A stretch of 64,000 bases of DNA from Rebecca billardiae RCC1528. Lineage: Eukaryota > Protista > Haptophyta. A program made the translations under genes and the position numbers. The notes under the pieces are model-generated. The model was not told the DNA's origin, did not search any database, and was given only the letters and a program-made list of their open reading frames with translations. This document shows, in pieces, positions 1 through 62,712 of the stretch. The first letter of the stretch is position 1. Every line of letters starts with the position of its first letter. The stretch lies in the NCBI GenBank assembly GCA_965240325.2, contig OZ251255.1, positions 434,001-498,000 of the forward strand. The letters run 5' to 3'.

Positions 1-3000
1 GCACTTCCACCTGAGAGAGCGTGCGCGCCGTGCTCACCTGCTGGCGCACGTATTCCAGGTGCCGTGGCGGCAACCCGTGCACCTCATCATCGGCGTCGGG
101 CTTCAGGGCGTGGCGCACGGCGACGCTGCGGTGCGTCGCGTAGAGGCGAAAGAGGTTGTCGTGCAGGTCGAGCAGCATCCACACCGGGCCCTGCGCCTTG
201 CGCACCGGCAGCAGCCAGTGCATGAAGGACTCCGCCGGCGCGGACGTCACGTAGCCGCGCAGGGACACCGGCGCGAAGCACGGGAAGAGCTCCTCGCGGG
301 GGATGACGTCGAGGATGCGCTTGGCCGACTCTGGCATCTCCACCCAGGCGGCCTCCCACACCTCCTCGGTCAACGCGTCCACGCACGCGTCGAACACGCG
401 CAGGATGGTGGGCACCTCGTTCGCCGAGTGTGCGTAGCCCGTGATGAAGGTCTGGCGCTTGTGGAACGTGCACAGGAAGAGGTGCCTGCGCGGGCACAGC
501 AGCTTCCACGCGCCGCGCAGGCCCTTCTGGCCGTCCGAGATGGTGACGCCGTTGGGGTCGTCCCACACAGCCGCCCCGCCGAGGTGCTGCATGAGGTATC
601 CGACGTGCGCGCACCACGAGTCCAGGCACTCCACGTCGACGATGTACGACACGCACAAGACGAACAGCTGCCGGTTGGCGTTCACGGCCAGCGTGACGAA
701 GAGCATGCCTGCGTCGCGCGCGTGCGTGCGCGCGGGCAGGTCAGACGGGCGGGCGCTGAGGCGGCACGGACGCACGCGGCGTCGCGAGGGCGTGCCCGGG
801 TGCGGCGGGCGCGCGCACCCGCGCGCTTCGCGCCACCGCTGGCGGGGCGGTGCAGGAAGCACGCGTCGCTGAACGCGGCCGTGTTGCCCTTCGCGTGAAA
901 GTGCTCGCGGTAAAGCGCCTTGGCCTGCTTGGGCACGTAGTGGAAGCCACCCACTGCCTTCTTGCCGCGCACGTCAGCCAGCGCCTTCTGCACCTCCGCC
1001 GCGTCGGGGTTGAAGGCCGCGCGCTGCGCGCCCGCCGGCAGCCCCTGCTGCACCTCGTCGTGCACGCGGCCGAACATGGCCAGCAGCGCGTCCTCGACCG
1101 AGTTCTCGTGGAAGATGATGGGAGCGACCTCGTTGCCCTCCTGCGACAGCGACGCGCACACGGCCACGAGGTCGCGCGACATGGCCGTGTCGTCCCCGTA
1201 GATCTCGGCGCGCGCTTCTTTGTGCGCTCGCGCGATGAGCGATTCACCCATGGGGAGCTCTGCGTCCAGCTGGCGCGCGACCTCTCGTGCTTGCTGCGGG
1301 CCGTAGCACAGCTGCGCGTGCGTGGTCCCGCGCCGGGCCAAGCGCGCCTTCCAGTCCTCGACGATCGCCCGCCCGAGCTCGTGTTGGGAGTACGGCGTCG
1401 TGCGCACGCCCGGCTGGTTGGTCGGGCGCGGCAGCGAGCCGATGGGGTGTTCCTCGGACCCCTTGCCCATGCGCAGGTTGCGGCACATGGAGCCGTGCGC
1501 GACCGAGCGTTGCACGGCCCACGGCGGCGCGCCAAACGTGTCCACGTACTTCGACGGGCCCACCACCACCACGGACGGGCACCCGGGCGTGGGGCATCCG
1601 ATCGTCAGCTTGGCGCGGTCGACGCGCCGCGTCGGCGGCATGGCCCCCCGGTGCAGCGCGCACTCCAAGGCGTGCGTGAGCGCGTCGGCGAGGCGCGGGT
1701 ACACCTGGCGCACCATCGGGGGCTCGAGCAGGGTGGCGTCCGCCTTCACCTGGGAGTACGGGCGCGGCGCCCGCAAGCCCATTTTCCTCCACAGTGCCAG
1801 GGGCCGGAGCTCGAGGCGGTGCGCTGCCGCCGACGTGCTCGCCGAGGTGCTCGACGGCGCGGAGTAGCGGAAGTACCCGGCGTCACCGCCGTGGTGCAGC
1901 GACTCCGGCGCAACAAGCCGGGCGCCGGCCTGGCCGGCGCGGGGCTCGGCGGGACCGGTGGAGGGCGGCTGCGCGCGAGCGACGATGGGTGGACACGGCA
2001 TGAGGGCAGCCAGCGGGTCGCGCGCGCGAGCGGCGTCGCTGTCGGCGGACTCGTCCGCCTGCAGTGCCGCCTGCGCCGCGCGCGCGCGGGCGTCCGCGCA
2101 GTCGTCGTCCGCGATGCCCTCCTCCCAGTCGCGCACGTCGATGGCGGCACTGGCGGGATCGGCGTCCGTGACGAGCGGCTCGCCGCGGGCGTCGGACTCG
2201 CCGACGCGCATCGTCGGCCAGTCCGCGCTCAGGGCGAACAGCGGCGCGTTGCCGCGGGCGGCCGCCGTCGTGTGCGTCCTATGGCCCACGGACGCGTCGA
2301 CGAGGGGCACTCCACCGCGCGCCCATGCGGGCGCCGACTTCTCCGTCGCCAACGCGTCGGCAAGGTGGCCACCGAGGTGGGCACGCTGGCCGGCGTGCAG
2401 GGCCAGGGCGAGGTCCCCGCCGGACAAGAGGCCACCTGCGTGCGGCAGCGCAGGGAGGGCCCTCAGCCGCGCGTCGTCGTCGTCATTGCCGCCGTCGCCA
2501 CCGGAGGCGCCGCGCGGCTGCGGCGGCGCGCGCGAGGCGCAGCCGGGCGGCTGCGCGATCACCGCGCGCGCGCTGCTGCTGTCGAGGGGCGGCCCCGCCG
2601 GGTGGAGTGGCGGGCGCGCCGTCGCGGCGCACACAGCAGCGCCGGGCACCGTCACCGCGACGCAGGGCACGGCGTCGCCCGCAGCGCAGGGTGCGCCCGG
2701 CGCTGGCGTTGCCACGCGAGCGGGCGAAGAGTGCCCATCGCCAGGCCGCGGCGACGCGGGCTCGTGCGCGCCCGGCGCGTCCGAGCTCGAGCTTTGGCGG
2801 GCGCCGGTGTGCCGCAGCGGGGCGGACGCTGCGTCGGGGCGACGCACGGCCGTGGGCGCGCGCGGCCCGACAGCCGGGTCGTCAACGCCATCGGCGCGTG
2901 GGGGCCGCGCGCCCTCGTCAAAGGGGGCGCCCACGTGCGCGCCCGTGCCGTGCGCGGCCGCGGCGGTGGGCGCGCGCCCACCGCCGTCGGCGTGAGGCGC

Positions 3001-6000
3001 GGGGTGGCCGCCCGCAAGCCCCACGACGTGGGGCACGGCAGGCGCCGCTGCGCGCTCATGTGCGAGCTGCGCGCCGTCGGCAGCGCACACGGGCAGCGCC
3101 AGCTGCAGCGCCGACTGCGCCCAGGCCCGCTGCTCGTGGTCCGACGGCGCCTGCTGGCCGTGCGCCGCGGTCGGCAGGTCGACCACCAGGCGGGAGACGT
3201 ACTCGTGGTGCGCAGGCGAGCCGAGCCGGAAGCGGGCGTCAGCGCCAGCGCGCGTGGGCTCAGCCCCCCAGCGCAGCCTGGTCTCAAACGAGTGCTGGAG
3301 CCCGCGCTCGAGGGCGGGCACGAGCCGATACGGCGTGGGAGGCGGGTCGGAGCGCGCCGCGCACGGCGTGGCGGCGGGGCGAGGCGCGCTCGGCGGCGGC
3401 GTGAACGAAGCGCGGAATGTGTCCGCGAGGCCCCGCCCCCCGAATGAGAACACAGCCTTCAGGACGAGCGCGTCCGCCGCACCCTGACGCGTAGGCCTCT
3501 TGCGCGAGGACGACGGCACGGACCCCGAGGACGCGGCGCGCGCACTGGGGGCCGAGCGGTGATGCCACATGGCGGGGAAGATGTGCACTGCACCTGCGCT
3601 TTCCTGCAGGGCAACGTCGCCGTGCAGCGGCACGGCGTCGGCGCGCGCACCGGGGGGGCGCGCGCCGACCGTCTGCAGCGGGAAGGGATTGGTGGGCACA
3701 CTTTGCGGCAAGTGCAAGAGGACCACTGCCGTCCACAGATGGTCCTCGTCGGTCGTGCCGTCGACGTGCCACCCGTACGTCGTGACGTCGCCGTCGTCGC
3801 ACGTGCCGCGGCCCCCGTCGGGCGGACGCATCGGCCGCCCGAAGACATGCCAGGCCGTGAGGTCGAGCGCGTCGAGGCCGCGGACACCGTCAGAGGCGTC
3901 GCCGCGGAACAACGAGCTCACGACGCCCTTCAGCGCCGCCACCACGCGCTCAAAGGCGCGGCACCCCAGCACCGAGCGCGCAGAGGAGCCGTGGTCGCCC
4001 ACCCCCCAGCGCCGCTGCGCGGCCGCCTCGCCGCCCGCGTCCGCGGACTGGTACGCGTGCACCGTGCGCAGGAGGCCGCCACCCTCATCCAGCAAGGGCA
4101 TGGACGCATCGCCGTCCCCGCCGAGGCCTGCGTGCTGCAGCACGTACTCGCGCAACGGGCCAACCAGCACGCCCATGTCCATGTCCAAACGCTGCGGTGC
4201 CGCAGCGGCGGCACCAAACGCGGCCTGCAGCGCGCGCCCAACCGCGGCGTTATGCGCGAGCATGTCGTCGAGGCTGGGCGCGGGCGCCGCCGCAGGCGTC
4301 GGCGCCAGCGCGTCGCCCAGCGGCGGCTCGCCTGCAGGCGGCAGCGCGCGCGGCACCACCACGGCGGAGGCAGGGCGCATCGCGCCCGACGCCGCGCTCG
4401 TCACCTCGTCGCGCCACGGCGCAGCGGCGCCCACGACAGCGTGCGCACCGCACAGCGTCAGCACCAGCGTCACTGGCGGCTGCGAGACGGCCGCGCCGGC
4501 CACGAGGGCCTGCGCGAAGGTGGCGTCGAGCAAGGGGTGCAGACGCGCGCCCTCGCCGACGTGCACCAGCGCGGGCGCGAGCGGGATGACCACTGCCCAC
4601 ACGGTGCGCTCGGCGATGGTGGAGGCGGCCCGCAGCAACGGCCGCGCCAGCCACCCTTCGCGCAGCGAGCCGTCCTCGCACGCGGCCACAAAGGCCGCAA
4701 GACCGGCGTGGCCGTCGGCGACCACGGCAGCACGCAGCCTGACGGCGGCTGCGCGCACGGCGGCGTCACGTCCAGCGGCGGCGCCGGACGTGGCAGCGCG
4801 CGGCGCTCCATCTGCCGCCACCCCTTCGCCGGCCCCCACGACGGCCTGCGAGACGGCGCCGAGCCACGCCAAGCGGGCGCTCTCGAGTTCCGCACGCAGC
4901 TGCTGGTCGCGCCAGCGTGCCTGCTCAGCCGACGCGGGAACGAACGCGCGCGGCTGCGCCGGCACGGGCGCGCAGAGCGCGCGTACGGCAGCGTACGCCT
5001 GCGTGCGCAGCTCCGCCGCTCGCGCACGCAGCGCGTCCGCGCAGAGGCTGCTGCGGCCTGCTGGCCACGACGCCACGCGCTCGAAGGCGACGAACAGAGG
5101 CTCGGACTGGCCAGCGTCCGCGCCGAAGACGGCGCGCGCGTAGTACATCACCGCCTCGGACGGGCATGACAGCGGCGGGCACGGGGGGGGCGCGCCCGTC
5201 CAAGCGCCCGACGGCGCCGCCGCCGCCGCCGTCGTCGCCGGGAGCACGTCGTCGACGCCTCCGCCAGTCCCAGCACCTGGGCGGGCATCCGGACGGGGGG
5301 CGCACAACGCCGCCAGAGCCAGCTTCGTCCGGAACGGAGCGGCGGCCCAGGCCGCACGCACTGCCCACGCGCATGCGCCCTGCGCGTGCTCAGCGGCGCG
5401 TGCGTGCTGCCCTGGGGTCGGCGCCGAGGACGACGGCGACAGCGACTCCGCGCCACCCGAGCGGCGCGCGTGGGACGTGCCTGCGGGCGGCGGCGCCGGT
5501 TTCCCTCCGAGCGCCGCTGCGGACGCCGTCAGTCGCGCCGTCTCCGCGAAACTGCCCTCCTCCGCCAGAGCCCCGTCGGCGGAAGCACCACAGGCAGCGC
5601 GCACGGCGATCTGCGCGACGGCCCTGAACCAAAGGGCCGCCGCGCACACGCGCGCCACCGAGTCCGCGCGCTCACGCAGCGCGTCCGGGTGCGAAGCCAA
5701 CAACTCCGCACACTCCACCACAGTGAGCAGCGCGTCGGCGCCGCTGCCACCCCATACGCGCGGCACTGTGACCTGCGCGGCGGCGGCGCCAAGGCCCACG
5801 TCGGTGCTGTGGACCACGCCGAGGGTGCACAGCACCAGACCAAAGGTGAACCTCCACGGGGCTGCTGCCGAGGAGAACTGCAGCGTGCACAACGCGTCGT
5901 CAGCCGCTGCGATCACCGCGTCCACGAGCAGCAGGTCGTCCTGACTGCTGGGGCCGGCGGACACATGCCGCATGCCCGCCTGCGCGGTACGTGCCAGCAC

Positions 6001-6039
6001 GTGCGGCGGAGAGGCAAACGCAGGCGCGCGCGAGCACAC
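1..6039 (-). mobile_element. Mutator-like (MULE) DDE transposase gene, 3' end runs off the window; long N-terminal extension
   Basis: ORF 682..6039 spliced over GT-AG intron 709..836 continues in frame into an exon from 708 to beyond position 1. The product reads FSDACF (D1) ... GMLFVTLAVNANRQLFVL ... VTISDGQKGLRGAWKLLCPRRHLFLCTFH (D2 and CxxH) ... TSAPAESF (E), the MULE catalytic signature. Upstream CPTPGCP...HGSMC resembles the MuDR/WRKY-type zinc DNA-binding domain. The start codon is uncertain. Confidence 0.85.
3440..3960 (-). other. 2OG-Fe(II) dioxygenase-like domain inside the MULE ORF
   Basis: YGWHVDG (HxD) ... LWTAVVLLHL ... GAVHIFPAMWHHRSAP (distal His) ... VLKAVFSF (basic residue on the last strand). 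Boundaries are approximate. Confidence 0.6.
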
Positions 6040-6797
6040 ACACGGGGCACATCGTCAGACAGGGGACGGGGGCGCATGGGAGTGGTGCGGTGTGCGCGCG
6101 CGCGGCGGCGCACGCCACCAACATCGCTGCCGACCACACACACCCGCCCCGGCCCACCGCGACCTCGCACCATTCACGAATCACGAGTGCGACTTGCCTG
6201 CTCGTCGCGGCCGGCGACCGTCGACGCCTCAGACCGACTCGGATGCGAGAAGGGGGAACTCCTGCGAGGGGAGGCCGCAGGGAACAAGAACGGTCGGTGC
6301 GTGTGCGCGATGCGCCGCGCGCGACCGCGCGGCGCGCGCACGACGCCCGCGCGCGTGGAAGGCGTACCCCCTTAACGTCGTGCTCACGCCCAGCCCTCCC
6401 TCGTGGCGAGCTCGGGAGCAAGTTTTGCGGCGCGCCCCCCGGCGTCGCATTTCTCTAACTAATTGACGAGCAACGTTCCGGCGGCGGTCCGGGCGGGAGG
6501 AGTCGACGGCGTCGTTTCGTCGCGGGTGGGCGTCAGGCTGCGCGCAATACGAAAGTACCCACCCCCGCTCATTAGGGTACTCCGCCCGAATACAAGGCGG
6601 GCGTTCGCGCCGGTTCGCCGCGAGCGGTATCTTCCGCGTTGCGGGCGAGCGGCGCCATTTGCTCGCTCCCGAAGCTTCTGGCCGTCGGAAAACTGGCGGG
6701 GGTGCCAGTCCGGAAATCGCCGTGCTGAGATGCGGAGGTTTGTCGGAGTTCTGGTTGCTCGGTCGGTCCTCGTCGGACTTCCGGAGGATTCCCTTAT

Positions 6798-8786
6798 CGT
6801 TACCGTAACCCGTCCGACACGAGCCGATTTTCGGGGAAATTCTCGCGCGGGCCGCACGAGCGCACAGAAGACGCTACGGTGGCCGCGCAGGCGCCTGACG
6901 AGTGCCCCGGGCATGGGACTGCAACATCCCACCCAGCCTCCCCATCCCTCCGCCCCTCTCTGCCTCGCCGGGTTGCACGCGGCTGGCCGGTCACGTAGCT
7001 CGTGGTGAGCCATTCGTGAGCGTGGAGCCCTGCTGCTCAGTGCGGCGATGCAGCGAGGCGAAGCGGCGCGTAAGATGGCGCATCTTACTCCGAATGCAGT
7101 CTGCTGCCAGCACAGCCGCCCTCGCCGGAGTGCCTGGTCGTCACCTTCGTTGTGTGCACCTGTCGCGCGCTGCTGTGAACAAGCGAAGTCTCAGGCCTCC
7201 CCGGAGCCATTCAAACACGCTCGTCCTCGACGAGGCGTGCGCGAGGCACCGCGCGAGCGCGGGAGCGGCCCTTCCTAGCATACTCCTGCACGGCCATCCA
7301 CCTCGCCACAGCCTGCCATGTCACACTCCTCCCCGCACGCAGTGCTCGCATGCCGCGTGCAAGTCGGTCGACTGACCTGGTAGGAGGGTGCACAGAAATA
7401 TTCGACTGCGAGGAGACGGCAGCGAGCCCACGCGCGCGGCGCCGTCCCGCGCTTCATTGTGCTGTTCTAGACCAGTCGCGCGCCCGCGGCACCGCGCCCG
7501 CCATCTCCGCGTCGCGTGCCAGTCCACGCCGCGCGCGTGGCTCTCGACGTGTGCGTCGAGGGCGTCGTGCGTCCGATTCGTACCCGCATGTATTCAACAA
7601 ATACGACAAATCGCCGAGCTGGACGGAACTTGGTCGCGCGATGGCATGGTCGCGCTGTGTGACGTCGCTCGCCGCAGGAAATTCGGTACGCGACGAGAGC
7701 ACGGCGCACGCGCACGGCGCGGCGTGGGAGGCGGGGCGGTGGTGTCCTCGAGCCATCCCGCCCGCGCCGCGGTGCGCCAGCCGCCACCTCGCCGCGCCGT
7801 GGCCCATGCCGCGCGGCAGGTGTCGACCAGACCGACCTTGCCGCCCAACAGAGGGCCGCGCCGGAAATTCTGTATTTGTTGAATACAGACTTACCCACGT
7901 GCCCGCGATGCGGCGGCGCCCATGGCGGCGGCGTGGCGCGGCGGCGGCGGCGCGGGCAGCCTGACGGGCCAGATAGGGCGCGCCAGGTCGGGGCGATCGT
8001 GATGGGATGGTTCCATACGCATCAGTGCGTGCTCCTGTGCATCTCAAGAGCGCGCTGGGCGCCCTCTCTCGCGCCTATGCCCATCCCGCGCGGTCTGAGA
8101 AGCCTCCCGGTTTGGCCATTGTCGTGCCGTGCTCGGTCGTGGCTGCCCGGCGGGTCGGAGAGGTCGAGGCGAGCCGGGTCGTTCGCGACGGACGATGCCT
8201 ATGGGTCATGGCGAGTGCCAGCACGCAGCTCGGGCGCGCGCCCGGCGCCTCCTCGCCGCGCTACATCCACACCAAGATCTGGCCCAAAAACAGGCTTCAA
8301 GCAGAGCGAAACTCAGTCTGGGAGCTGCTCAGGCCGCTGTGTGCGGTTTGAAAGCGCGCAAACTTGTGGAGCGGGTGCTCACATGGGTTGAGCACAATGC
8401 GACGTTGCGTTTTTCCGCGAAACACCACTTCCTCGCCTCTCCGCGCGCGTGCCGCGCGGCTCCCGTGAAGTCATCTTAACAGGTCACGTGTGGCCGCCCG
8501 TGGAGCGAGGGTGGGCGAGGAGGGGCGGGCGAGGGTGACGCCGCCCCGGGGAACCGCCTTGGCAGGCCGGCCGACGCCTCGCAGCCCCCCTCGCGGCACA
8601 CATGCGCGCACGCCCGCCGCTCGGAGCGCGCCATCGATTCGAATGGGCGTGCGCGCGAACGACCATGCTCAAACGGCTTCGGCCCGATCTTTCCCCACTG
8701 TGGCGGCGCGAAGTGCCGCGAACGCGGCATGAAAAAAAATCCCCCGCATCCCCACTGGGCGGAAGTGCGGACGGGTTACGGTAACG
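6798..8786. repeat. 19-bp perfect inverted repeat pair bracketing about 2 kb of non-coding DNA
   Basis: CGTTACCGTAACCCGTCCG at 6798..6816 and its reverse complement at 8768..8786. No TSD seen. Confidence 0.7.
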
Positions 8787-8835
8787 CCGAAAATCGATTT
8801 CTTTACTGTGCAACAATTCCTGTCGTCTTGAGATA

Positions 8836-9343
8836 CAGGCAATCGCGGGCAATAAGAAGTCAGAGATCTGCCGGCTAGCCTCGGTTTCTTAGCTGTTCGG
8901 TAGCCCGAGCGCCTACGGAGCCTCAGTTTCTTAGGTCCGCCCGCCGCGCAGGCGCGGGGGGCGCAGGGGGGCAGAGCCCCCCCGCCGAGTCTTTAGGCCC
9001 GGCCGGCGAGGCCGAAGAAAATTGTTGGGCCTTTTTGGAGCAAATCTGGCATGATGTTGCATGCTGGGCGTGTGCAGTGGAGCAGCTCCCCAGCAGGACT
9101 GGAGGAGAAGTGACCAGCAAGACGACCAAGTTGACTAGTACAGTAGTCCGCGCGGGCGGCGCCGCGGCGCGCCACGCGTCCCACGCGCCTCGGACCCGAG
9201 CCGCGACGAGTAGTCTCGGTTTCTTAGTGTGACTATGCGTATAGCGAACCAGCCAATCGCTAGCCTCAGTTTCTAGGCCAGATCCGCAGATAGCAAGCCC
9301 CAGTTTCTTAACGTGACAGCTCCTTATTGCCCGCGATTGCCTG
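8836..9343. mobile_element. MITE, Tc1/mariner-type (TA TSD), 508 bp
   Basis: Perfect 21-bp TIRs CAGGCAATCGCGGGCAATAAG (8836..8856 and 9323..9343), flanked by TA on both sides. About 5 internal copies of a CTC(A/G)GTTTCTTAG-like motif. No credible ORF. Confidence 0.9.
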
Positions 9344-10127
9344 TAAGGCTCTCAAACTTCGGAATGTCAATATTCGCCTGAAATGAGCTGGTCAGTCACG
9401 CTGACAATAATAAGTTTTGCGAAAATAAAATGTCACATATACTGGAGATATACGACCTCAATCTCGACGCGATCTCGTCGGCAACATTAGTACATCAGGG
9501 GAGATATACATGCACGATCTGCCAAGGTGATCTCGCTCTGTTTATTGCTGCACCAGAATAGCACCGTCTAGACGATCACATTTTGGCAGTCTGAAATTGG
9601 CACAGGCGGCGGATTCTACACCCTGGAATTAAGCCTTAACGCCTATACTAACTAGTTCGTCCAAGTAAATACCCGCGTGTGATAGTTATATTCATCATGC
9701 TAATAAGAGATTTCGTCGGGCGGATATATATATGAGATTGTGGCACCCGACGAGCGTGTAACGGTCGGCGGAGCTCTGTGACCCCGCCACTCTGACTGAG
9801 CAGCCACCATTCCCCGCTCCGAGCACGGGCGGCGCGCGGTCCCTTGGACGATCACATATGACGGCGGCCAGGCGATGGATCGTCATCATCAGGACTGCTG
9901 ATGGCCAGCAGCCCGCGACGACGTACTACGCTGTGCAATGAACTTATTCGACAGCCATACCGATCATCGGATGCCGGCTCGCAGAGCCGCCGGCGCCGCG
10001 TGGGAGCCCCGGAGCAGTGCAGTGAAGAGGATGCGAGGTCAGACCTCATCGAAGAGAACCGGCCCGGGCCCATCGACCCGGCCCGGACCCACAGCGGGCG
10101 ACCGCTGGCCGTGGCAGCCAGCAGCCG

Positions 10128-11353
10128 TCACGACTGCTGCCGCTGCTGCTGCTGCGGCGGCGCAGCTTCGGCGCGCGCGGCCGCAGCGGCCGCTGTGTCA
10201 GAAGCGGGCGTCGGGGCCGTGCGGCGGCGCAGCCCTCCGCCCGCCCGCCCGAACGCAGCGGCGGCGGCGGCGGTGGCGCCGGACGGCGGCGCGGCCTCGG
10301 CGCCAGCCGCCGCCGCGCCGGCAAGGCCCGGCGTGCCGCCAATGCCGCCCGCGCGCGCGGCGGCAATTGCGGCGGCGGGCGCGGCCGGCGGCGGCTGCGG
10401 CGCGTCGACGGTGGACTGGCAGAGCGGACAGGTGTTCGCCCGGACCAGCCAGCGGCGGATGCACCTGCGACCGCCGAGCGCGCGCGCCGCGAGCGCAGCG
10501 GCAGGCGGCGGCGCGCGGGCCGGGGGCCGGGGGGCGCGTAAGCAGTCGGTCGCGCCGCCGAGGCGCCGCCACCGCGACCAACCGACGGCCACCCGCCGCG
10601 CCATGCCGCGCCGCGCGGAGGTCCGCAGCCAGCCAGCCCTCCGACTCAAACAAGCCCGCGCGCGCGCCCAACCCTACCCCCTACCGCAGCACCCCCGCGC
10701 GCTGCACGCACCCTCCGTGCCCAACCCTACCCCCAACCCTACCCCCACGCGCGCGCGCCGCGCGCGCGCAACGCACCCTTTGTGAAACGCGTGCGCGCAC
10801 GGCAGCACGCTCAGCGCCTCGCCCTGCGCGTAGTCTGCGAGGCAGATGGCGCACGCGCCCGCCGTGCCGAGGCCGAAGGCCGCCGGGGGGCGGTGCCGGG
10901 CGGCGGGCTCGGGCTGGCGGGGTGCGGGGGGGCTGGGCGGCGCGCCAGGACGGAGCGCGCCGCCGCGCGCGGACGGCGGCGGCGGCGGCGCGGCGGCGGC
11001 GGCACCGTTCGCGGTGTGCGGTTGTTGGCTGCCGTCGGCGTCGGCGTCGGACGGCGAGGCCACGCCGCCGGCCGCGCCGCCCTGCAGCGCCGCCGCGCCG
11101 CCGCCGCCGCCGCCCGCGTGCGCGCTCCCCGCCGCCGCGCCCAGCGCCGTGGCGATGGCGGACGCCGCGCTGCCCAGCGTGCTTGCTCGAACGCCGAGCG
11201 CGCCGAGCGCGCGCGCCGCGCTCGGCGGCGGGCCGGGCGCGCACAGCGTCGGCGGCGAGGGCGGCTGCGGGGAGGCGGCGGCGGCGGGGTGCGGCGGCGA
11301 GGGCGGGGTGCTCGGGGGCTGGGGCGAGGCCGCCGTCGCGGCGTCGGCTGGCG

Positions 11354-16388: not shown

Positions 16389-16920
16389 GCCGAGCGGCGA
16401 CGGCGGTGGCGGCGGCGGCGGTGGTGCCGCGTGCTTGCCGGCGCCGCCGGTGCCCGCGTGCCTGCCCCCGCGCGACGGCGACGTGCGCCTCCAGCCCACC
16501 TCGCTCGAGCAGCTCGCTACCCAGGTGGGTAGCTACTCACATTACCCGCGCGCGTCCGGCGTACTGATGCTTTACTCGGAGCGTAACGGCTCGGCGGACG
16601 GGCGCGGCGGCGGCGGCACCGTGCGCCGCGCGCACTGGTCGATCACCTGCGGCGGGCGGCGCGCGGACGACCTCCACGCCGTCGCCGCCGCCGCGTGCGC
16701 CGCGCTCGGCGCGCCGACGGCGGGCGCGCGCGGCGCGAGCGTGGCCTTGCTGCCGCTGTTGCAGGCGCTAGCCGACGCGACGGCGGCGGCGGAGCCCGGC
16801 GCGGAGGGCGCCGACGGCGGGCCGAAGCGCTCGGCGACGCAGGCGGCGCGCGCGGGGCTCGCCGCGATGACGGCGCAGCTGCGCTCGCTCTACGGCGCGG
16901 CGGCCGACAGCGGCGGCGGC

Positions 16921-16958
<38 letters not shown>

Positions 16959-17671
16959 GGCAGCGTTGGCGCTTGTCGGCGGCCCGGCGAACCTGTCGAC
17001 GACGATCGTCCCGCTCAAGGCGTGCGGCGGCGCCGACGCGCCGCGCGAGCCCGCCGCCGGCCCGCGCCACTGCCGCGGCAAGCCACTCACCCGGCGCTGC
17101 CCTCTGAACTCCGTCGTGACAGTTACATGCGGGGAGCCTGTGACCGTTACGGAGGCTGTTACGGAGGAGGCGGGCGGTGGGGAGGATGGCGCGGCGGTGG
17201 GTGGCGGCGGCGCGGAGGCCGAGCGCGCGGGCTCGGACGTGCACGCGCCGAGCGCGCAGTCGCTGCTCGGTGCGTCAAGCGGCGGCGCCAACCCTAACCC
17301 TAACCCTAACCCTAACCCTGCCGCCATCAGCCGCCAGTGTGGCAGCGCTGGCGCCGCGCCGCCGGTGCCGTGCGCGGTGCCCTCGCCCCCGCCGCCCGCG
17401 CGCGACGCGGGCGGCGGCGGCGGCGGCGGCGGCTCGTCCGCGCACGCGGGCGCGGGCGGCGGCGGCGGCGGCGCTGGCGGCGGCTCTGGCGATGCAGCGG
17501 CCGGCGGCGGCGGCGGCGCGCGCGCCGGCGGCGGGAGCGGCGGCGGCGCTGCCGGCAGCCAGGCCGACGGCGGCGATGCCGAGGCCGACGGCACGCGCGC
17601 GCCCGCCGAGTGCCCCCGCCTCTTCGCGCCCACGCCGCAGCTCGTCGGCCTCGACTTGTATTGCGTGCACA

Positions 17672-17705
<34 letters not shown>

Positions 17706-17906
17706 CGGCGCGGGCGGCGCGGGCGGCGCGGGCGGCGCGGGCGGCGCTGGCGGCGCGGGCGGCGAGGGTGGCGCGGCGGGCGGCGGCGCGGCGGGCGGCG
17801 GTGCGGCGGATGCACCGGTCGTGTGCTTCCTCCGCCGCGCGCTCCCGGACCCGGCCGGTGCGGCAGCGGAGCCCGGCGGCGGTGGGCCGCGCGTCGGCGG
17901 CGGCGT

Positions 17907-17979
<73 letters not shown>

Positions 17980-20900
17980 TGGGGCGGTGGGTACGGCGCA
18001 GGCGGCTATGGCGGCGGCGGCGCCGGGCCGCTGGGCGGCGGCGGCATCCCCACCAACCCGGCGGGCGTCACCGACTGCGCCGCGTTCGACACCGCGCGCG
18101 CGTGCCCCAGCGCGACCGCCGCCGCCAACGGCGGCGGCGGCCATGCTGACGGCGGCGGCGGCCATGCTGACGGCGGCGGCGGCCATGCTGACGGCGGCTG
18201 GCGTCCGCTGCTGCTGCAGAACGGCGCGTACCTGTGCGCGGGCGACGCGCCCGCCGCGCCGCCGCCGCCGGCGGCGCTCTCGGCCGACGCGCCCGCCGCG
18301 GTGCTCGCGCAGTCGCGCCGCCGGCCGCGCGTGCTATGCTTGCTCTCCGGACCGGCCTCGCTGCCCCCCGGTGCGCTGGGCGCGGCGGGCGACGGCGCGA
18401 CGCGCCTGCTCGGCGCGGTCGACGCGCACGGCCTCTCGATCCCAAAGTGCATGGAGGGCGTGCCGCCCGCCGTCGGCGCGGAGCGCACGAGCCCGGTCGG
18501 GCTGCACCTCGGCCCCGCGCCCGCGCCGGGCGGCGGCGAGGGCGAAGGCGGCGGCGGCGGCGCGCCTCCGCCGTCGGATGACGCGGCGGCGGGCGCGGCC
18601 ATTGCCGGGCTGCGGCTAAGCGTCTGCGCCGCTGGCGCTTTCTGCCCGAACCTGTTCAACCGGACTCTGTGCCCGCCCGGACACTACTGCCTGCCGGGCG
18701 CGGTGTCGCCGGCGGTGTGCGAGCCCGATCTGTTCCTCGGCGCGCGCCGCGTGCTCGGCGCGCCATTTGGGCTGCGGCCGCGCGGCGCGGCCGAGCGCTG
18801 CCCGGCGGGCAGCGCGCGCGCGCCGCAGCGGCGCGCGTGGGTCGGCGCGCTGGCGCTGGGGGGCGCGTTCGTGGTGGCGGCGCTGCGCGACCTGGACCGG
18901 CACAAGCGGCGGAGCGCGGCGAAGCGCCGGGCGTCCGACGACACCGCCGCCGCCGCCTCGAGCCCGCCGCTCGCGAATCTGCATGTCGAGATTGCGCGCC
19001 TCACGCGCGTGGTCCAAGTAGCCATCGGCGCGGGGCGCGCGCGCGGCGGCGTGCCGCGGCCGGGCGACGGCACGGCGGGCGCGTTCGTCGGCGCGGCGGA
19101 GGCGGACGGCGCGGCGGTGCCCGCGCCGATGGCGGCGGCGCTCGCGGCCGCGGACGAGCGCGCCGCGCCGCGCGGCGGCCGCGCGGCCGCGGACGCGGCC
19201 GCGGACGCAGAGGCTGGCCTCGGCGGCGTGCTGGGCGGCGCGCTCGGCCGGCGTTGGCGCGGCGCCGCCGGGCTGGACGCGGCGGGCCCGGGCGGCGGGG
19301 AGGACGGCGGCTTCGCCAAGCTCTCCGACCGGATCTCCTTCCAATTTGAGGAGCTCGGCTTGCGCGTGCGCGTGCCCCCCGCGGTCGCGGCGCGGCGGCG
19401 CGCCGCGTCGGCCGCGGCCGCGGCCGCGGCTGCGGCCGCGGGCGCGGCGCCGGGCGCCGTGCCGGCGCTGGCTGGGGCGGCGGCGGCGGGCAAGGGCGGC
19501 GGCGGCGCGCCGAGCACGCCGCCGCACGCGGGCCGGCGCGGGCACCAGCCGCACGCCTCGCCGCCCCCCGCCTCACCCGGCCAGCTCGCCGCGGCCGCCG
19601 GCGGCGCCACGCTCGAGGAAGCCGGCGAATGGTTGCGCGTGTTGCACTCGGTGACGGGCTCGATCGAGCACTCGTCGCTCACGGCGGTGATGGGCGTGTC
19701 GGGCTGCGGCAAGTCGTCGTTCCTCAACGTGCTCTGCGGCCGCGCGCAGTACGGCGTCCCCACCGGCACGCTGCGCCTCAACGGCCGCGACGAGTCCGGT
19801 GCCGAGTCCGGTGGCGGCGGCGGCGGCATGGGCCGACACCGCGCCAGGTTGGGCTTTGTGCCGCAGGACGACTGCGTGCGCGAGGCGCTGACGGTCTTCG
19901 AGAACGTGCTGCTCTCCGCGCGGCTGCGGCTGCCGCGCGGCACGACGGCCGCGCGCGCGCGCGCGCTGTCCGCGCACGTCCTCCGGACTCTCGGGCTCGA
20001 AGGAGTCCGGGACTCGGTGGTGGGCTCTGCGTCGAAGCGCGGAATCTCTGGCGGGCAGCGCAAGCGTGTCAACATCGGCCTCGAGCTCGCGGCGGACCCG
20101 CTCGCGCTCTTCCTCGACGAGCCGACGTCCGGGCTCGACGCGACGACGGCCGAGCTCGTCCTGCTCGCGCTGCGCCGGCTCACGCGTAACGGCCGCACGG
20201 TCGTAACGGTCTTGCACCAGCCGCGATACTCGGCGTTCCGACTGCTCGACCGGCTGCTGCTGCTCGGGGTGGGCGGGCGCACGCTCTTCTGCGGGCCGCC
20301 GCTCAAGGTGGTGCCGTACCTCGGCGCGGCGGGCTATCCGATGCCGTACGCCGAGAACCCGGCGGATTTTATGCTCGACGTCGCGTCGGGTCTTATCCCG
20401 CCGCGCCGCCGAGCCGCCGGCGGCGAGGGCGGTGCAGGCGGCGCGGCGGGCGCGGTGGCGGCGGCGGCGGCGGCGGACGGCGGCGGCGTGGTGGGTGTGA
20501 GCCTGGACGGCACGGACGAAATCGAGCGCGAGCGCGGCGGCCGCGGCGGCGGCGGCGACTCCGAGCCCTCCGCCGAGCTCCGCACAGAGGCCGCCACCCT
20601 GCAGCTCGCCGCCGCGTGGCGCGCGCTCAGCGGCACCCTGGGCAGTCTCGCGGACGAAGTGCCGCCGCCGACCGCCGTGTTCAGCCAGTCGCAGCGGCTC
20701 GCGGCGCTGGGCGCGTGGCGCGTCGCGCTGGCGGCGGCGAGGCCCGTCGAGCCCGCGGGGCCCGCCGCGGCCGCAGCCGCCGCCGCGGCCGCTGCGACGC
20801 CGCAGCAAGCGCCCAGCGGCCTCGACGGCGCCGCCGCCGAGCCGCCGCCGGCCGCGCGGCGCGTCGAGCGCGCGCGCGCGTTCGCGCGCTCGTGGCGGCT

Positions 20901-23900
20901 CGCGCGGCGCGCGCCCGCGCTCGCGCGGCGGTGCGCGGCGCTCGCCGCCGAGGGGCAGCTGCACGTGCTCGACTGGCCAGGTGTGTGCCGCCGTCTTTGC
21001 GCGCGCAATACATGAAACGGGCTGCTTGTTCCTTTCTTCGCGCGCGCGCGAACGCGCGCGACGGCGCGTGCGCGCACCGCCGCCGCCGTGCGCGCGCGCG
21101 CTGACGCGCGCGCCGCCCGCGCGCTTTCGCGCGCGATATGTTCGCGCCGCCGCCGCCGCCGCGCGCTTTCGCGCGCGCGCAGTGCTGCTGAACGAACTCG
21201 AGGGCCTCGTGCGCGCGGGCGTGCTCACGCGCTCACAGCTCACGCTCCTCGCCGCGCGGCTGCGCGGCCAGCTGGAGCGATCGCGCGCAGACACGCTGGC
21301 GTCGGCGCGCGCGTCGGCGCGCGCGGCGCCGGGCGGCGCGGCGGCGTGCGGCGGCGCCGTCGCCGCCGCGGCGGCGGACACCGCGGCGGAGGGCATGGCA
21401 GACGCGGCGGCGGCGGACGCGTGCATCGGCCGTGGTGCGCTCGCGCGCGCGCCGCGCCGCGCCGCACCTCCGCCTTTCCCGCCCGTGGGACGCGCCGCCG
21501 CCGCGCCGCCGCGCCGCGCCGCCGCCGCGCGCCCACGCACGCGCGCGCCGCGCCCTCGCGCGCGCGCGCAGCCGAGTTTGAGGCGGTGCTCAGCATGGCT
21601 GCCTCCTCGCGGGTGGAGGATTTTGACCTCGACCGGGACGGCCGGATTTCCGCGGACGAGTTCTTCACGTATCAGCTTGAGGTCTACGGGCTGGCGGAGG
21701 CGGAGGTGTGGGCGCGCTGGCGGCAGCTGCAGAGCTTGCGCCGCGGCGGTGCGCGCGGTGGCGGCGGGGGTAGCGCGCGCGCGGCGGAGGCGGGCGCGCT
21801 CGGGGGCGGCGGAGGCAGCCGCGGCGGCGCCGGGCCCGCGCCTGCCACGCTCGGAGGCGCGGCCGAGGACGGCGGCGGCGGCGGCGGCGGCGCGCTGCCG
21901 ATGGCCGCGGTGGGCGCGGTCGAGTCACTTCAGCCGGTGCGGCTGCGCGCCACGCCCGGCTTTGGCAGCCAGCTGGCGGTACTCGTGGGCTCATATGCTG
22001 CGCAGCAGGTGCGCGCGTGTGCGCGTGCGGCCGCGGGTGCACGCGGCGGCAGCGTACGCCCGCGCCTCGCTGCCTGTGCGCGTGTGTGTGCGCACGGCGC
22101 ACGCGGCGGCAGCGCACGCCCGCCACACCCGCCGCCGCGCGCCGCCGCGCGCGCGCGCGCTCGCTGACGGCATGCGCCGCGGGCGCGCCCGCCGCGGCTC
22201 ACACGCCCGGCGCGCGCGCGCGCGCTCCGCCACGCAGCGCCGCGTGTCCGGCGGCCTCGCCGCCGCCCTCGACTGGCTCGCGATGGCGCTGGTCGCGGCG
22301 TTCGTGGGCGGGCTGCAGCGCGCGCAGCTGCCCGATAACTATGGCCGTCTACCCACGTTGTATGCACTCACCCTGACGCTATTTAGCCTGTTCGTCGGGC
22401 TCTCGTCCGGTGCGGGAGATTGCGATCTCGCGGCGCGCCGCGCGCGCGGCGGGGTTGCTGCTGCGGGCGGCGGGCGGTGCTGCCGCGCCGCGCGGCGAGC
22501 ACGCGGCGGGTGCCCCCGCCTCCGCGCCGCGCCGTCGGAACTCGGCGGCCGCGCATGCGCGACGGCCGCGCCCACACACGCGCACTCACGGCCGCCGGCG
22601 CGCGCCCCCCCTTCCCGCCACCGCTCCCCCGGCCCGCGCTGCGCACCAGTCCGCTCCTTCGCCTTCGACACGCCGTCCTTCTGGCGCGAGTCGGCGGCGG
22701 GCGTCTCGCCCCTCGCATTCTTTGCCAGCCGCGCGCTCGCCGACCTGCCGCCGCTTGTTGCGCGCTGCGCCGTGTTCGGGGTGGTGTTTTGGTCGGCGGC
22801 GGCGCTGAACGTGACGCTACAAACGCTGCTGCTGCTGCTGCTCGCGGTGATGCTCTGCGCGTCCGGTGCGCGCGCGCGTGCGCCCGCCCGCCGCCGGAGG
22901 GGGGGGGCGCGCGCCGCCAAGCGCCCGCGCCGCCGCCACTCGCCGCCGCGCCGCGCCGCCTGCCCTACCCACCGCCGCGCCGCCCGCCCGTCCGCCCCCT
23001 CCGCCCCCTCCGCCGCCGCGGCGCGCGCGCGCGCGCGCAGGGCTGGGGTACCTGATCGCCATCCTCGCGCCCGCCTCCGTCTCCGTCACCGCCACCGGCG
23101 TGCTCATCTGCGTTCTCTGCGGCTTCTTTGGGGGCGTGGTGCCAACTGTCGCCGAGGCGCGCGCGCCGCTGATGCGCGCCTCGCTCGGCGCGAGTTACGG
23201 GCGGTGGGCGCTGCAGTGCCTCGCGGCGGAGGACTTTGGCGGGATCCCGTCCGCGCTGTACGCCATCGTGGGCGAGGAGCTCATCGAGGTGCGCACCCCA
23301 TCAGCCCGAACCCAAACCCGAACCCTAACCCTAACCCGAACCCCAGCCCGAACCCTAGCCCCAAACCTCGCCGCGCCGCGCCCCGCGCTGCCGCCGCGCC
23401 GCGCGCGCGCTCACGCCCGCCGCGCCTCCCGCCCTCGCGCCCGCGCCCGCGCCCCGGCGGCAGGCGGCGGGGTACCCGTCGCCCGCGGCGCTGCGCGAGG
23501 CGGGCGCCGGCCCGTGCGACACGCCCCTCGCCGTGCTCCTCACCATCGGCCTCCTCCTCCGCGCCGCCGGCGCCGCCGCGCTTCTTCTGACACACCGCGA
23601 CAAGCAGCATCGGTCGCCGCCGTGCGGCGCGGCGCCGGCGCGCGGCGCGCGCGCGCTGCACGGCATCGCGGCGACGCTCGAGGTGAGCGCGGTGGCGGCG
23701 CGAGATTCGATCTCGCCGCCGAGGCACGGCTCGCGCCAGCAGCCGCGCGTGCCGTGGTCGCCGCTCAGCGCGCAGCCGCAGCCGACGGGGGCGCACGCCG
23801 GCGGCGCCGCTGACTCGTTGACGGGTGGCACGCCGCCGCCGCCGCCGCTGGCGCTTGGCGACGCCGCCGCCGCCGCCGGCGGCGGCGGTGCCGCCGCCGA

Positions 23901-26216: not shown

Positions 26217-29200
26217 TCAGATGCTGAGCACACACTCGCCAGCAGCAGCAGCAGCGACGAGAGCGGGCGCCGGTGCTGCTACTCGTCGCATCACCCCGCG
26301 GTCGTCGCCTCCGCCCGACGCGCCCCCCCCCGCAGCAGCAGCAGCAGCAGCCTGCTGCCGCTGCTGCTCGCCGCTCGCGGCCCCCGCCTCGGTGGTGGAT
26401 GTCGTCGCCGCCGCCGCCGCAGCGGCAGTGGGCGGCGCGCGGCCCGACTGCCGCCACGCCGCGCGCAGCGCTTTGGCGCCGCCCGCCGCGCTGATCTTGC
26501 CGTTGCCGTCGAGCGCCAGCCGGCGGAGCGTCGCGTTCGGCCGATCGCCGCGCAGCGCGTCGGCGAGCGCGCGCGCGCCGCCGTCGCCGATCCCGTTCTC
26601 GCGGAGCGTGAGCTCGGTGAGCGTGGCGTTCTGCCGCAGGCACGCGCCGAACGCCGCGGCGCCCTTGTCGCCGAAGCGGTTCCGATCCGCCCAGAGCTGG
26701 AGCACCGAGCGATTCGCGCCGAGCGCCGCCGCGATGGACGCGCCCGCTTCGGGCGGCAGGTCCGCGCCGCTCACGCGCAGTTGCAGGAGGGACGTCGCGC
26801 CTCGCAGGCCGTGGGCGAAGGCGGCGGCGCCCGGCGCGCCTAGCTGGGAGTAGTCGAGCGTGAGGCGCGTGAGTGTGCGACTGTCGCGCACGGCCTCGCC
26901 CAGCGCGCGCGCGCCCGCCGCGGAGCTCGTGAAGCCGATCAGACTCGCGGCGGTGAGGGACGGGCTGGCGCGGACGCAGCGCGCGCACGCGACAGCGCCC
27001 GCCTCGGTGAGCGCACAGGACTCGAGCCAGAGCTCCCGGACTCTGGGCTTCGCGCCGAGCGCGTCGAAGAGGCCCGCCTGCGCCTCGTCGTCGGACAGCG
27101 CGCCCGCGCGACCGCCCGGCTGCGCTCCGATCTCCTCGCCACCCTCGCCGCCGCCCTCGCCGCCGCCCTCGCCGCCGCCCTCGTCGCCCTCCGCCCGGTC
27201 CGCCTCCGCCGCCTCGCCGCCGTCGGCGTCGGCAGGCGGCGTGGTGAGCGGCTCAAGCAGCGTCAGGCTGCGCAGCTGCGCGCAGCCCTCGCGCAGCGCA
27301 GCGCCGAGCGCGCGCGCGCCACGCGCGCCCATGCCCGTCCCGCCGAGCCGCAGCTCCCGGAGGCTCTCCCGGTTCCGCCGCAGCCCGTCCGCGAGCGCCT
27401 CGACGCAGTCGGCGCCGAGCGCGGTGGCGCGCACTGTGACGGTCACGAGGCGCGGCGCGGCCGCGCGCAGCGCGGCGCGCAGCGCGGCGCGCTCCTCTGC
27501 GCCCAGGGCGCAGTCGTGGAGGCTGAGGGCGGAGACGCGCCCGTCCGGGCTTGAGAGAACGCGCGCAAGCCCGCCGACCACCTGTCGCGGGAGGCAGCGG
27601 AGTGTCACGTCTTCGAGGCTCAGGGGCAGCGCGGCGCCAAGGGCGGCCGCGTGCTCGGGCGCGACGCGCGCCGCCGTGGCAGCCTGGTGCTTCTTCGCAC
27701 CGCCGCGCGCGCCCGGCGGCGCGGGCCCGCGCGTGGCGGCGCGCACGGCGCCGCCCGACGCTACCAGTCTGCGCAGCCGCGAGTCGCCCAGCTCGGCCAG
27801 GAGCGCAGACCAGTCCGCCGCATCCGCGCTGCTCGCGCCGCCGTCGCGCGCGCCGCCGCGCGCCAGCAGCGCGCCGAGCCGCGCGGAGAGGAAGCGCGCG
27901 CGCACGGTCGCGTCGAGCGCGCGCTGCTCGTCACCCACGGCGCGGAGGATGGCGGCGAGGTCGCGCGGCTCGCTCGCGCGCGCGTCGGCGATCGCGAACG
28001 CCGCCGCGCGCGCGCCCAGCCCCCGCGGGAACGCCGCCTCGCGCTGCCGCTTCCGCTCGGAATCTTCCAAGTCTTCCGCGTGGAACCCATCGACCAGCGC
28101 GACGCCGACCGTTGGTCGCTCCTCGGCGGGGTCGGGCACGCGGCAGTCCCCGCCGCCGCGCTGCCGCCGGTGCTGCGTCGACGACGACGGCGCGTGCCGA
28201 GGGTTGCGCACGGCAACGAGCACGTCGTGCAGAAACCCGGGGCCGCGGCCGCTCACCAGACTTGTGTACAGTTCAAACCCAACCCACGCGCGCGTGAACG
28301 CTGCGCCCTCGCGGTCGACGACGCTCACGGTGCCGTCGGCGAGCTGAAGCGCGCGGTAGAACGGCGAGTGCGCCACGGGGCCCGCCAGCTCCGTGCCCAC
28401 GGCGTGCTGCCGAATCGCGTACGCACACACCCAGTATACGGTCGCGCCCGTCGCCTCCGACGGCGCGCCGGCCGGCGCGCGCGCGCGCGCGTGCTCGTGC
28501 AGGCACGCGACGAAGTCGGCGACGGGCTCGCCCCACCAGTGGCTCACGAACCACTGCGGCGGCTGCGGCCCGTTCGCCACGAGCTCCACCAGGCTGCACC
28601 CCCGCGCGCGCGTCGCCGGCAGGATCAGGTGCGCGTTGAGGTCATACAGCGAGATTGTATCTCGCGAGAGCGGCGCGCCGGCGCGCGCGGGGTCGGTGGA
28701 GGTCCAGCGCTCGCGCGCGCAGAGGACGGTGGCCGCGTCGAGCAGCCGGTCGAGCTGCTCGAGCGTGATCCCGCGCAGCGCCGCCTCGCCGATCTCGCAG
28801 CCCGAGAAGTTGCCGCCGCCCCGAGGGTTAAGGACAGCCCAGCGCTCGGACGGTCGGAGCGGCGCCGGAGCGACGAGCGAGCCCTCGGCAAACTCGTGGC
28901 CGCGCGCCATGACCACCGCGTCGGGTGTGCCGGGAGGCGGCGGACCGGCCGGGAGGCCGGCCTCCCACGCGTGCAGCTCCGCGTACCACCGCGCGAGCGA
29001 CGCGGCGCCGCCCGCCGGGTCGGGCAGCGGGCGCGCGCGCATGAACGCGCGCGCGCGCAAGCGGCAGCTCCAAGTCGTCGGCGAGCGCGGCCAGGGCCAG
29101 GAAGTGGCGTGCACCGAGCGCAGCGCCAGAGTCGTGCTCGAAGCGCGCCCAGGCGCGCTCGGACGCGCCCTCCACCTCGGCGGCGGGCGCGCGGACGGCC

Positions 29201-29319
29201 TCCGCGGCATGCGGCTCCGCGGCCGCGCGCGCGCGCGCGGCCGCGCCGACGACTTGCGTGGCCGCCTGCACGGCTCGGCCGCCGCGCCGGGAGGATTCGG
29301 ATGACGCGCCGTTTCCCAT
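26217..29319 (-). CDS. N-myristoylated TIR/HET-like domain plus ribonuclease-inhibitor-type LRR protein (frameshift at a (CG)n tract)
   Basis: MGNGASS start at 29319. PQWFVSHWWG...YWVCAYAIRQH...FTRAWVGFE. C-terminal LRRs such as LTELTLRENGIGDGGARALADAL. The N-terminal frame joins the main frame only across (CG)n 29046..29058. Confidence 0.75.
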
Positions 29320-29907
29320 CGCGCGCTCGCGGCGTGCCCCGTGCGATCGCCCACGTGCTCACGCAAGCGCCGAGCGCTGGCCGCCGTTGCTCGTCAGCCC
29401 ACCGTGCGCGCGGCCGCCGAGAGACGGACGGGCCCTGATGATCGCGTGTTGACTGGCCCAAAGAAATGGCCAAGCGGCAAGCGCGGCCCCGGGCCGGGCG
29501 GACGAAACTGACTTGAACCAATTCCGACGGCGCTACGGCAGCCCTCATCAATCGGTGACGGCCGTGACGGCTTCCGATGCCAGGCGGTGACAGTTGGCGG
29601 GCGTCAATCCGTCGCCTACTAGTAGATGACAGACACGTGCGGAGTGACGCCTTGATGACGTCATCGCGTGTGCGCGCGAGGGTCAGCGACGCCGGCGGAT
29701 GCCGGTGCCACGGTGGCGGCGCGCTGGGCATCATTGCGATGCGGCCGGATCTGGCGGACGCCGACCGTACGTGAAGGCCAAGGGCAGGCCGGCACCCTGA
29801 CCGGAAACCCGCCGGCGCACCGCCGTCCGCCGGCCGCGACGCATGCGGCTCGCCCGCGGGCGCGACTGGTCCCGTGCCCGACCGCTGACCCCAGCGTGTG
29901 CGCGTGC

Positions 29908-61961: not shown

Positions 61962-62153
61962 GGCGCCCGAGGCGTGCTGCTGCGGCTCCGACCGCGTAGC
62001 AGCGATGCGCCGTCGGCAGAGGGGCGACGATGGCGGCGGACAAGATGAGTCCGGATGGGCCAAGCCAATGCACCGGACTTTCACGTGGCCACCAGCTCGC
62101 CAAGCGCCGGGGCCGAAGCCACGCGCCAGCAGCACAGCCAACCTCGTTCGACG

Positions 62154-62582: not shown

Positions 62583-62667
62583 GCGCGCCGCGTGCGGACG
62601 GCCGCCGCGGCCGCGCCGCGCGCCACGCCGGGCGCGCCGCGGGCCCACGCCCGACGGACGCGCTCGA

Positions 62668-62712
<45 letters not shown>

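Follow-up and report, generated by a model that had tools for sequence, protein, structure and literature searches.

Transposons of the Mutator superfamily can bring with them proteins other than a transposase, and those known as KI-MULEs (MULE, Mutator-like element) carry a Ulp1 protease. VANDAL elements carry VANC, which acts in anti-silencing, and a MuDR element of Phytophthora carries a SET methyltransferase (both as cited in PMC12730594). Among fungal DNA transposons, genes for TET/JBP enzymes are carried by KDZ, Plavaka, EnSpm, PHIS, hAT and IS3EU elements (PMC12730594). In Arabidopsis, ICU11, a P4H/AlkB-like 2-oxoglutarate (2OG) dioxygenase, serves as an accessory protein of PRC2 (PMC7368280). 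We found no report in the literature of a hydroxylase-type oxygenase in MULEs or other Mutator elements. Here, we describe a MULE of the haptophyte Rebecca billardiae RCC1528 whose giant transposase gene probably includes a domain of this kind. The right-hand part of the element lies in a stretch of 64,000 nucleotides, hereafter called the window (contig OZ251255.1, positions 434,001 to 498,000 of the forward strand; G000:C39:434001-498000), in an assembly of 72 Mb and 41 contigs (GCA_965240325.2). The base composition of the window is 73.7% G+C, and negative positions denote DNA to the left of it.

The copy in the window belongs to a family of nearly identical elements, referred to as family A, and a diverged sister, family B, is present in the same genome. 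Taken as a whole, our observations are best explained by a giant MULE transposase gene that contains a diverged oxygenase domain of the PF13640/PKHD type, a reading in which we have reasonable, though far from complete, confidence. The segment in question, in the N-terminal half of the predicted protein, is probably a genuine but very diverged 2OG/Fe(II) oxygenase domain of the prolyl-hydroxylase type, which would retain its metal triad and form one polypeptide with the transposase.

Results

The proposed 2OG/Fe(II) oxygenase-like domain, of the double-stranded beta-helix (DSBH) type, covers residues about 681-880 (3400..3999, reverse strand) and was recognized by profile-profile comparison with hhalign and by its language-model neighbours. 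Exon 1 and exon 2 of the gene were each searched and aligned separately, and the gene model was never joined into one protein. The reference set for hhalign comprised 15 annotated PF13640-type oxygenases, namely E. coli YbiX and 14 genes of cyanophages and pelagiphages, in whose alignment the HxD, GGEL and H..P...G.R columns coincided as expected. When about 65 scan windows of 200 residues (step 50) from the pairwise alignment of families A and B, taken from both exons, were compared with this set, only those covering residues 651-950 matched, with a probability of 69-73% (P 3-4e-5, score about 36). The flanking scan windows 601-800 and 801-1000, which partly overlap the match, reached 7% and 27%, respectively, and every other one stayed at or below 0.3%, with scores of 6-13. 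The score of the segment (36.1) lay about 11 standard deviations (sd) above the scores of column shuffles of the query (11.1 ± 2.2, maximum 18.8, n=200), and the reversed query scored 11.7. The aligned part extends over residues 750-832 (3544-3792 of the window) and places YGWHVD on the HxD of the references and IFPAMWHHR on their distal-His strand.

The same region was matched by the phage references alone (P 3e-4) and by a second profile made from a separate set of 110 YbiX-family sequences (P 7e-4), and the phage and YbiX references combined gave a probability of 81% (P 1.2e-5). Used alone, the family A query gave 65% and the family B query 67%, so that the overall range was 65-81%, with P from 1.2e-5 to 6e-5. 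A homologue search seeded with YbiX yielded only sequences that are at least 80% identical and therefore added little diversity. In leave-one-out comparisons the annotated PF13640-type members scored 27-208, the most diverged of them 27-42, and the segment scored 34-39; other DSBH enzymes scored below the segment against the same profile (AlkB, 25; RoxA, 20; TauD, 13). Among single references, YbiX scored 28.1 against the segment across both motifs, whereas E. coli AlkB scored 18.2 over nine columns outside the motifs, a match with a probability of 0.9% that amounts to noise. As further leads, the ESM-atlas neighbours of the core were almost all PF13640, OGFOD2-like or P4H clusters (0.86-0.87; 0.79 for the 471-aa piece).

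A first-pass annotation of this DNA had described the motif spacing of the segment as more prolyl-hydroxylase-like than TET-like, and the PF13640-type match and the noise-level score of AlkB support that description, TET having been compared through Pfam only. The same annotation had proposed a profile search of the segment, which succeeded with hhalign against PF13640-type references and failed with Pfam and HMMER.

The candidate iron ligands are the HxD motif H758-V-D760 (3760..3768, reverse strand), aligned to the PF13640-type HxD, and H827 (3559..3561, reverse strand), which lies in IFPAMWHHRS and is aligned to the distal His of the reference enzymes. Two basic residues that are invariant in families A and B are candidates for binding 2OG, namely R834 (3538-3540, reverse strand), at +7 from H827, and K861 (3457-3459, reverse strand), at +34 from H827 in the strand-like LVLKAVFSF. 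H758, D760, H827, R834 and K861 are identical in 10 of 10 family A copies and in family B, that is, in 13 copies of two families. The HxD...H...K motifs that the first-pass annotation had noted in 3440..3960 accordingly all lie in that interval (H758/D760, H827 and K861) and are kept in both families, and its question of whether other copies keep the HxD and His is answered by all of the family A copies and by family B. The loop that separates H827 from the strand with K861 (3460-3540) includes a conserved basic stretch resembling a nuclear localization signal, family A having SRKRPTR there and family B GKKPRR.

The ORF (open reading frame) that encodes this segment, at 682..6039 on the reverse strand, holds 1,785 stop-free codons, as had been claimed. 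Its G+C content is 0.83-0.96 at third codon positions (GC3) and lowest throughout at second positions (GC2), which is a coding pattern, and the codon bias is uniform along the frame. The frame of 1,785 codons is intact in 10 of 10 family A copies. It is predicted to be exon 1 of one giant transposase gene encoding about 3,600 aa. Exon 1 (837..6039, reverse strand) is open from 6039, with the first ATG at 5973, and comprises 1,734 codons and the first base of a split codon; its end reads ...FSDACFLHRPAS. The intron (709..836, reverse strand) has 128 nt, with GT at 836-835 and AG at 710-709, is in phase 1 and falls within the DDE core, and the frame shifts between 837 and 708. Exon 2 begins at 708 with G-MLFVTLAVNAN, and the alignment with family B picks up again at G-MLFVT; this exon encodes the rest of the MULE core (1..708, reverse strand) and continues to about -4930, with 1,968 codons open. 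The position given beforehand for an intron interrupting the DDE core was thus exact, the first Asp lying in exon 1 and the remainder in exon 2.

The DDE core could be read from motifs and their positions on the reverse strand. The first catalytic Asp, D1725, lies in FSDACF (865..867), and inspection of 230..535 identified the second Asp (533-535, ISDGQKGL), a CxxH (461-472, CTFH) and the Glu (230-232, APAESF). The CxxH follows the second Asp by 21 residues (D-x20-CxxH), and the stretch 230..535 is 75-82% identical to family B. The PF10551 MULE profile matched where the core would be expected, but only at 15-22 bits, short of the Pfam cut-off of 27.6; the match at 461-712 had an E value of 0.025 and 15.4 bits. 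A word search with the transposase core found no homologues, and phmmer against PDB sequences gave chance matches only. Upstream of the core, a zinc motif, C-x4-C-x27-H-x3-C, occupies residues 1482-1519 (1483..1596, reverse strand), was identified by the motif only and is kept in family B. Its spacing and position are compatible with the WRKY/GCM1-type finger by which MULE transposases bind DNA (described in PMC1702500), and the region matched no Pfam profile. A zinc motif had been placed at about 1470..1610, in agreement with the conserved C1482...C1519 found here.

From its N terminus, the predicted protein would consist of a conserved block (residues 421-545), the oxygenase domain (~681-880), a low-complexity linker, the WRKY/GCM1-like zinc finger, the intron-split DDE core, a SWIM-like finger and a long tail with OTU-protease-like motifs. 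The linker places about 600 low-complexity residues between the oxygenase-like part and the transposase part. No part of the N-terminal half is better conserved than residues 421-545 (4405..4779, reverse strand), where families A and B have 60-83% identity, more than in the oxygenase-like core; this block had no Pfam match and no match to the 2OG profile in the hhalign scan. In the C-terminal tail, at about -3900 to -4800, the alignment of the two families contains an OTU-protease-like motif, PGDGDCYFHA, and upstream of it a degenerate copy with the Cys replaced, PADGDDVLHA. Pfam did not report OTU in the tail of exon 2 at E<=1. After the SWIM-like finger, the tail contains a PHD-like cluster rich in Cys.

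The gene lies within an element of 17,760 bp (window -10966..6793, G000:C39:423034-440793), the limits of which are the points where copies cease to match, at 6793/6794 on the right and at about -10967 on the left. The window thus contains its right-hand 6.8 kb (1..6793). The element termini read GGGAAAAC...GGATTCCC. The right terminal inverted repeat (TIR), of about 490 bp (6305..6793), was recognized by its inverted match to the left end, seen in four copies; the left and right TIRs are 97% identical over about 490 bp, and both begin GGGAAAAC. A 9-bp target-site duplication (TSD), TTATCGTTA, follows at 6794..6802, and the identical 9 bp stand just before the left end. Such 9-bp TSDs flank four of the five testable copies, on contigs C39 (the copy in the window), C1, C5 and C8. 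The fifth, on contig C12, has no matching TSD, with ATTACTTTA on its left flank and AAGAAACAA on its right, and recombination between copies or a rearrangement is a possible cause. We assign the element to the Mutator superfamily because long TIRs and 9-bp TSDs are the hallmark of that superfamily; together with the DDE core and its CxxH, they bear out the initial view of a Mutator-superfamily transposon.

The genome holds at least 10 family A copies of the ORF DNA at about 100% identity, with a mean difference of 0.055%, and the ORF DNA is matched three more times at about 70% identity, in patches, by the copies of family B. The best explanation is that the family A element is an autonomous, recently active and very young MULE. 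It may still be active today, since the copies, of which there are at least 10, are ~0.05% apart and none has a disrupted exon 1.

The oxygenase-like segment had been noted to share its ORF with the transposase; this holds for every copy and for the second family, and the segment lies between the TIRs. A place for the segment in a neighbouring host gene was likewise considered and was rejected because each copy has the segment between its TIRs.

Family B allows the arrangement to be followed over a greater distance. Its element (G000:C27:988664-1004515) has 15,852 bp and three copies about 99.5% identical, with TIRs of 672 bp that are 100% identical and, on contig C27, the 9-bp TSD TATATAATA. 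The termini of both families read GGGAAAA. Family B is 42-54% identical to family A, with 54% across the oxygenase-like piece, and has the same architecture. The C27 copy has a single frame of 3,254 codons that runs from the N-terminal region through the oxygenase-like segment to the DDE core and reads through the intron position in frame; the copy on contig C24 has a TAG stop within the oxygenase-like segment. The fusion of the oxygenase-like segment and the transposase is older than the split between families A and B.

Each of the TSDs is an AT-rich 9-mer (TTATCGTTA, TAAAACAAA, TAAACTGTA, ATTTTGTAC and TATATAATA) despite the 74% G+C of the window, and several flanks of copies have a AAACTGTA-like, partly palindromic sequence in common. 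Because the TSDs are AT-rich and the flanks have this sequence in common, a preference of the element for AT-rich target sites is suggested. Two copies on contig C22 (459110-467467 and 478869-487226), about 19.8 kb apart, have an identical flank that includes the palindrome TAAACTGTATACAGTTTA. As this palindrome is found nowhere else in the genome, the pair looks like a tandem or segmental duplication and not like two insertions. The left part of the element contains internal direct repeats at about -9897..-9472 and -8955..-8568, which are 84-97% identical to neighbouring stretches. A second giant ORF inside the element (-9447..-4933, forward strand; 1,505 aa) is convergent to the transposase gene; a Pfam search with it gave no match, and its counterpart in family B has 1,495 aa.

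To the right of the element, the window contains host genes for an ABC transporter (ABC_tran and ABC2_membrane_7; 16435-21012, forward strand), a leucine-rich-repeat protein (26220-29366, reverse strand), an RCC1-repeat protein (31930-33528, reverse strand) and an LSM-domain protein (61482-62822, reverse strand). The host genome encodes at least 54 PF13640 domains, and no host paralogue close to the domain described here was found in it. Capture of the domain from the host found no support in this comparison.

Discussion

Several observations weigh against an oxygenase in the MULE transposase. The hhalign match extends over only about 60-70 columns, which are essentially the two metal-ligand motifs; a loop of 24 residues stands ahead of the strand carrying K861, no Arg occupies the usual place 10 residues after the distal His, and the GGxL-type strand of PF13640 is missing. 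The language-model scores lie below 0.9, with shared-feature counts of 115-123, and serve as leads only. Pfam searches at E<=10 with the ORF, its 471-aa piece, the 191-aa core and the family B piece gave no match, a word search with the 471-aa piece found no homologue, and an exhaustive HMMER search of 1.84 billion proteins with the alignment of families A and B gave 0 matches at E<=0.001. A metagenome scan with back-translated peptides returned 67 pattern matches, none of them real, and phmmer of the segment against PDB sequences gave chance matches only. AlphaFold2 produced no confident DSBH, with a predicted local distance difference test score (pLDDT) of 35.6 with no alignment and 37.8 with a three-row alignment, a low confidence explained by the fact that no alignment beyond the two families can be built. 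Fold searches with this model (Foldseek, VIA-align) returned noise (best Z 4.3). Finally, the ratio of nonsynonymous to synonymous divergence (dN/dS) from the comparison of the two families gives the core no lower a value (0.55) than the linkers (range 0.37-0.66).

Some further results bear on the same question. In the fold search with the low-confidence AlphaFold2 model, FTO, T7H, TraH and EFE appeared at Z 2.9-3.5 among unrelated folds, and the strands predicted in that model, at the same low confidence, lie at the places expected of DSBH strands. A tblastn search of phage genomes with the core gave no match. Synonymous divergence between families A and B is about 1. The 10 family A copies vary at 13 sites, of which 9 are synonymous (binomial P 0.0018), which indicates selection on the exon as a whole and not on the domain specifically.

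It could therefore be argued that the segment is not an oxygenase at all, and that an unrelated, conserved and partly disordered N-terminal extension happens to contain HxD, H and K. The lack of any Pfam, HMMER or PDB sequence match and of a confident fold, the shortness of a profile match that rests on two motifs, the missing canonical Arg and GG-strand and the unremarkable dN/dS all fit such a view. We nevertheless consider it unlikely, if well worth weighing, since the segment is the sole match among about 65 composition-matched scan windows and stands about 11 sd above the shuffles, the match was reproduced by two separate reference sets and by each family alone, the ligands fall in register and the language-model neighbours independently indicate the same family.

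Alternatively, the segment could be a true relative of the DSBH enzymes that has given up catalysis and serves the transposase as a binding or scaffolding module. Although the loss of the canonical 2OG-binding Arg position, the long loop before the last strand and the weak purifying selection on the core could all be expected of such a module, we regard it as quite improbable given that both families retain the three metal ligands although the domain has diverged by 46%, and that the invariant R834 and K861 remain as candidates for contacting 2OG.

There is a slight chance that the oxygenase-like part and the transposase are separate products, made through an internal promoter, polyadenylation or proteolysis (for example, by the element's own OTU-like protease), in which case the fusion would be only genomic. 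The low-complexity linker of about 600 residues and the protease-like motifs in the C-terminal tail would suit such an arrangement. No stop, however, separates the two parts in 10 copies of family A or in the 3,254-codon frame of family B, even though synonymous divergence is about 1, and the uniform codon bias along the frame argues in the same direction.

A TET/JBP- or AlkB-like base oxidase that would clear 5-methylcytosine (5mC) or N6-methyladenine (6mA) from the DNA of the element and so counter methylation silencing, as the first-pass annotation had entertained, is very improbable: several superfamilies of fungal DNA transposons do carry TET/JBP genes (PMC12730594), fusion to a DNA-binding transposase would deliver the domain to the DNA of the element and the substrate is not readable from sequence at such divergence, but no evidence for such an activity emerged, AlkB alone matching the segment at noise level and off the motifs where YbiX matched over both, Pfam showing no AlkB-type match and no Tet_JBP match at E<=10 among the ORF pieces searched, and the language-model neighbours all being P4H- or OGFOD2-like.

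If the segment is a prolyl-hydroxylase-type oxygenase, as we favor, it would fold as a DSBH and bind Fe(II) and 2OG, and it would hydroxylate a protein rather than a base; a protein substrate seems more likely than a base. Candidate targets are the transposase itself and host factors of ubiquitin, silencing or chromatin pathways. Transposition, or the escape from silencing, would in that case hinge on the availability of oxygen, iron and 2OG. An anti-silencing role may be compatible with a P4H-like enzyme, by other than TET- or AlkB-like chemistry, because the P4H-like ICU11 acts in chromatin silencing (PMC7368280). In its most extended form, the proposal would have the transposase carry an active protein hydroxylase to its own insertion or excision complex. 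The hydroxylase and the OTU-like protease would jointly alter a host factor of ubiquitin, silencing or chromatin pathways, or the stability of the transposase, so that Mutator transposition or escape from silencing is gated by oxygen, iron and 2-oxoglutarate. Such a system would be new as a kind of counter-defence or metabolic sensing by transposons, but this combination of steps we think rather doubtful.

Transposon enzymes known to act on the silencing marks of the host include TET/JBP in fungal elements and SET and VANC in MuDR elements. An oxygenase of the type proposed here would, if real, add protein hydroxylation and the sensing of oxygen, iron and 2OG to the transposon repertoire. The young and possibly active family A would offer an experimentally tractable system. 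The case also illustrates the limits of standard annotation, as Pfam, HMMER (over 1.8 billion proteins) and AlphaFold2 were blind to the domain, which was detected by a calibrated profile-profile scan and language-model features alone.

Compared with known systems, the segment most resembles the PF13640/PKHD hydroxylases (YbiX, the cyanophage and pelagiphage oxygenases, and P4H), with which it has Y-x-W-H-V-D and G-x-x-h-I-F-P-[AS]-x-x-x-H-R in register and whose most diverged annotated members have hhalign scores in the same range. Unlike them, it falls below every Pfam threshold, lacks the GGxL strand and the Arg at +10, and has several loop insertions, including the 24-residue basic loop. 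Furthermore, whereas PF13640/PKHD proteins have about 200 aa, the segment is embedded in a transposase of 3,600 aa.

ICU11, compared by description only, is an example of a prolyl-hydroxylase-like 2OG oxygenase with a role in chromatin silencing; it is, however, a host gene. The fungal TET/JBP transposons provide the precedent for a 2OG/Fe(II) oxygenase inside a cut-and-paste DNA transposon, but their enzyme comes from another branch of the superfamily, and the segment described here lies in the open frame of the transposase itself. Moreover, in PMC12730594, MuDR does not appear among the TET/JBP-carrying lineages and is represented only by Vandal and the SET cargo. VANDAL, the SET-carrying MuDR element and the KI-MULEs are, like the element of R. 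billardiae, members of the Mutator superfamily with an extra protein- or chromatin-directed activity. What sets the present element apart from them is that its extra domains are predicted to belong to one giant polypeptide.

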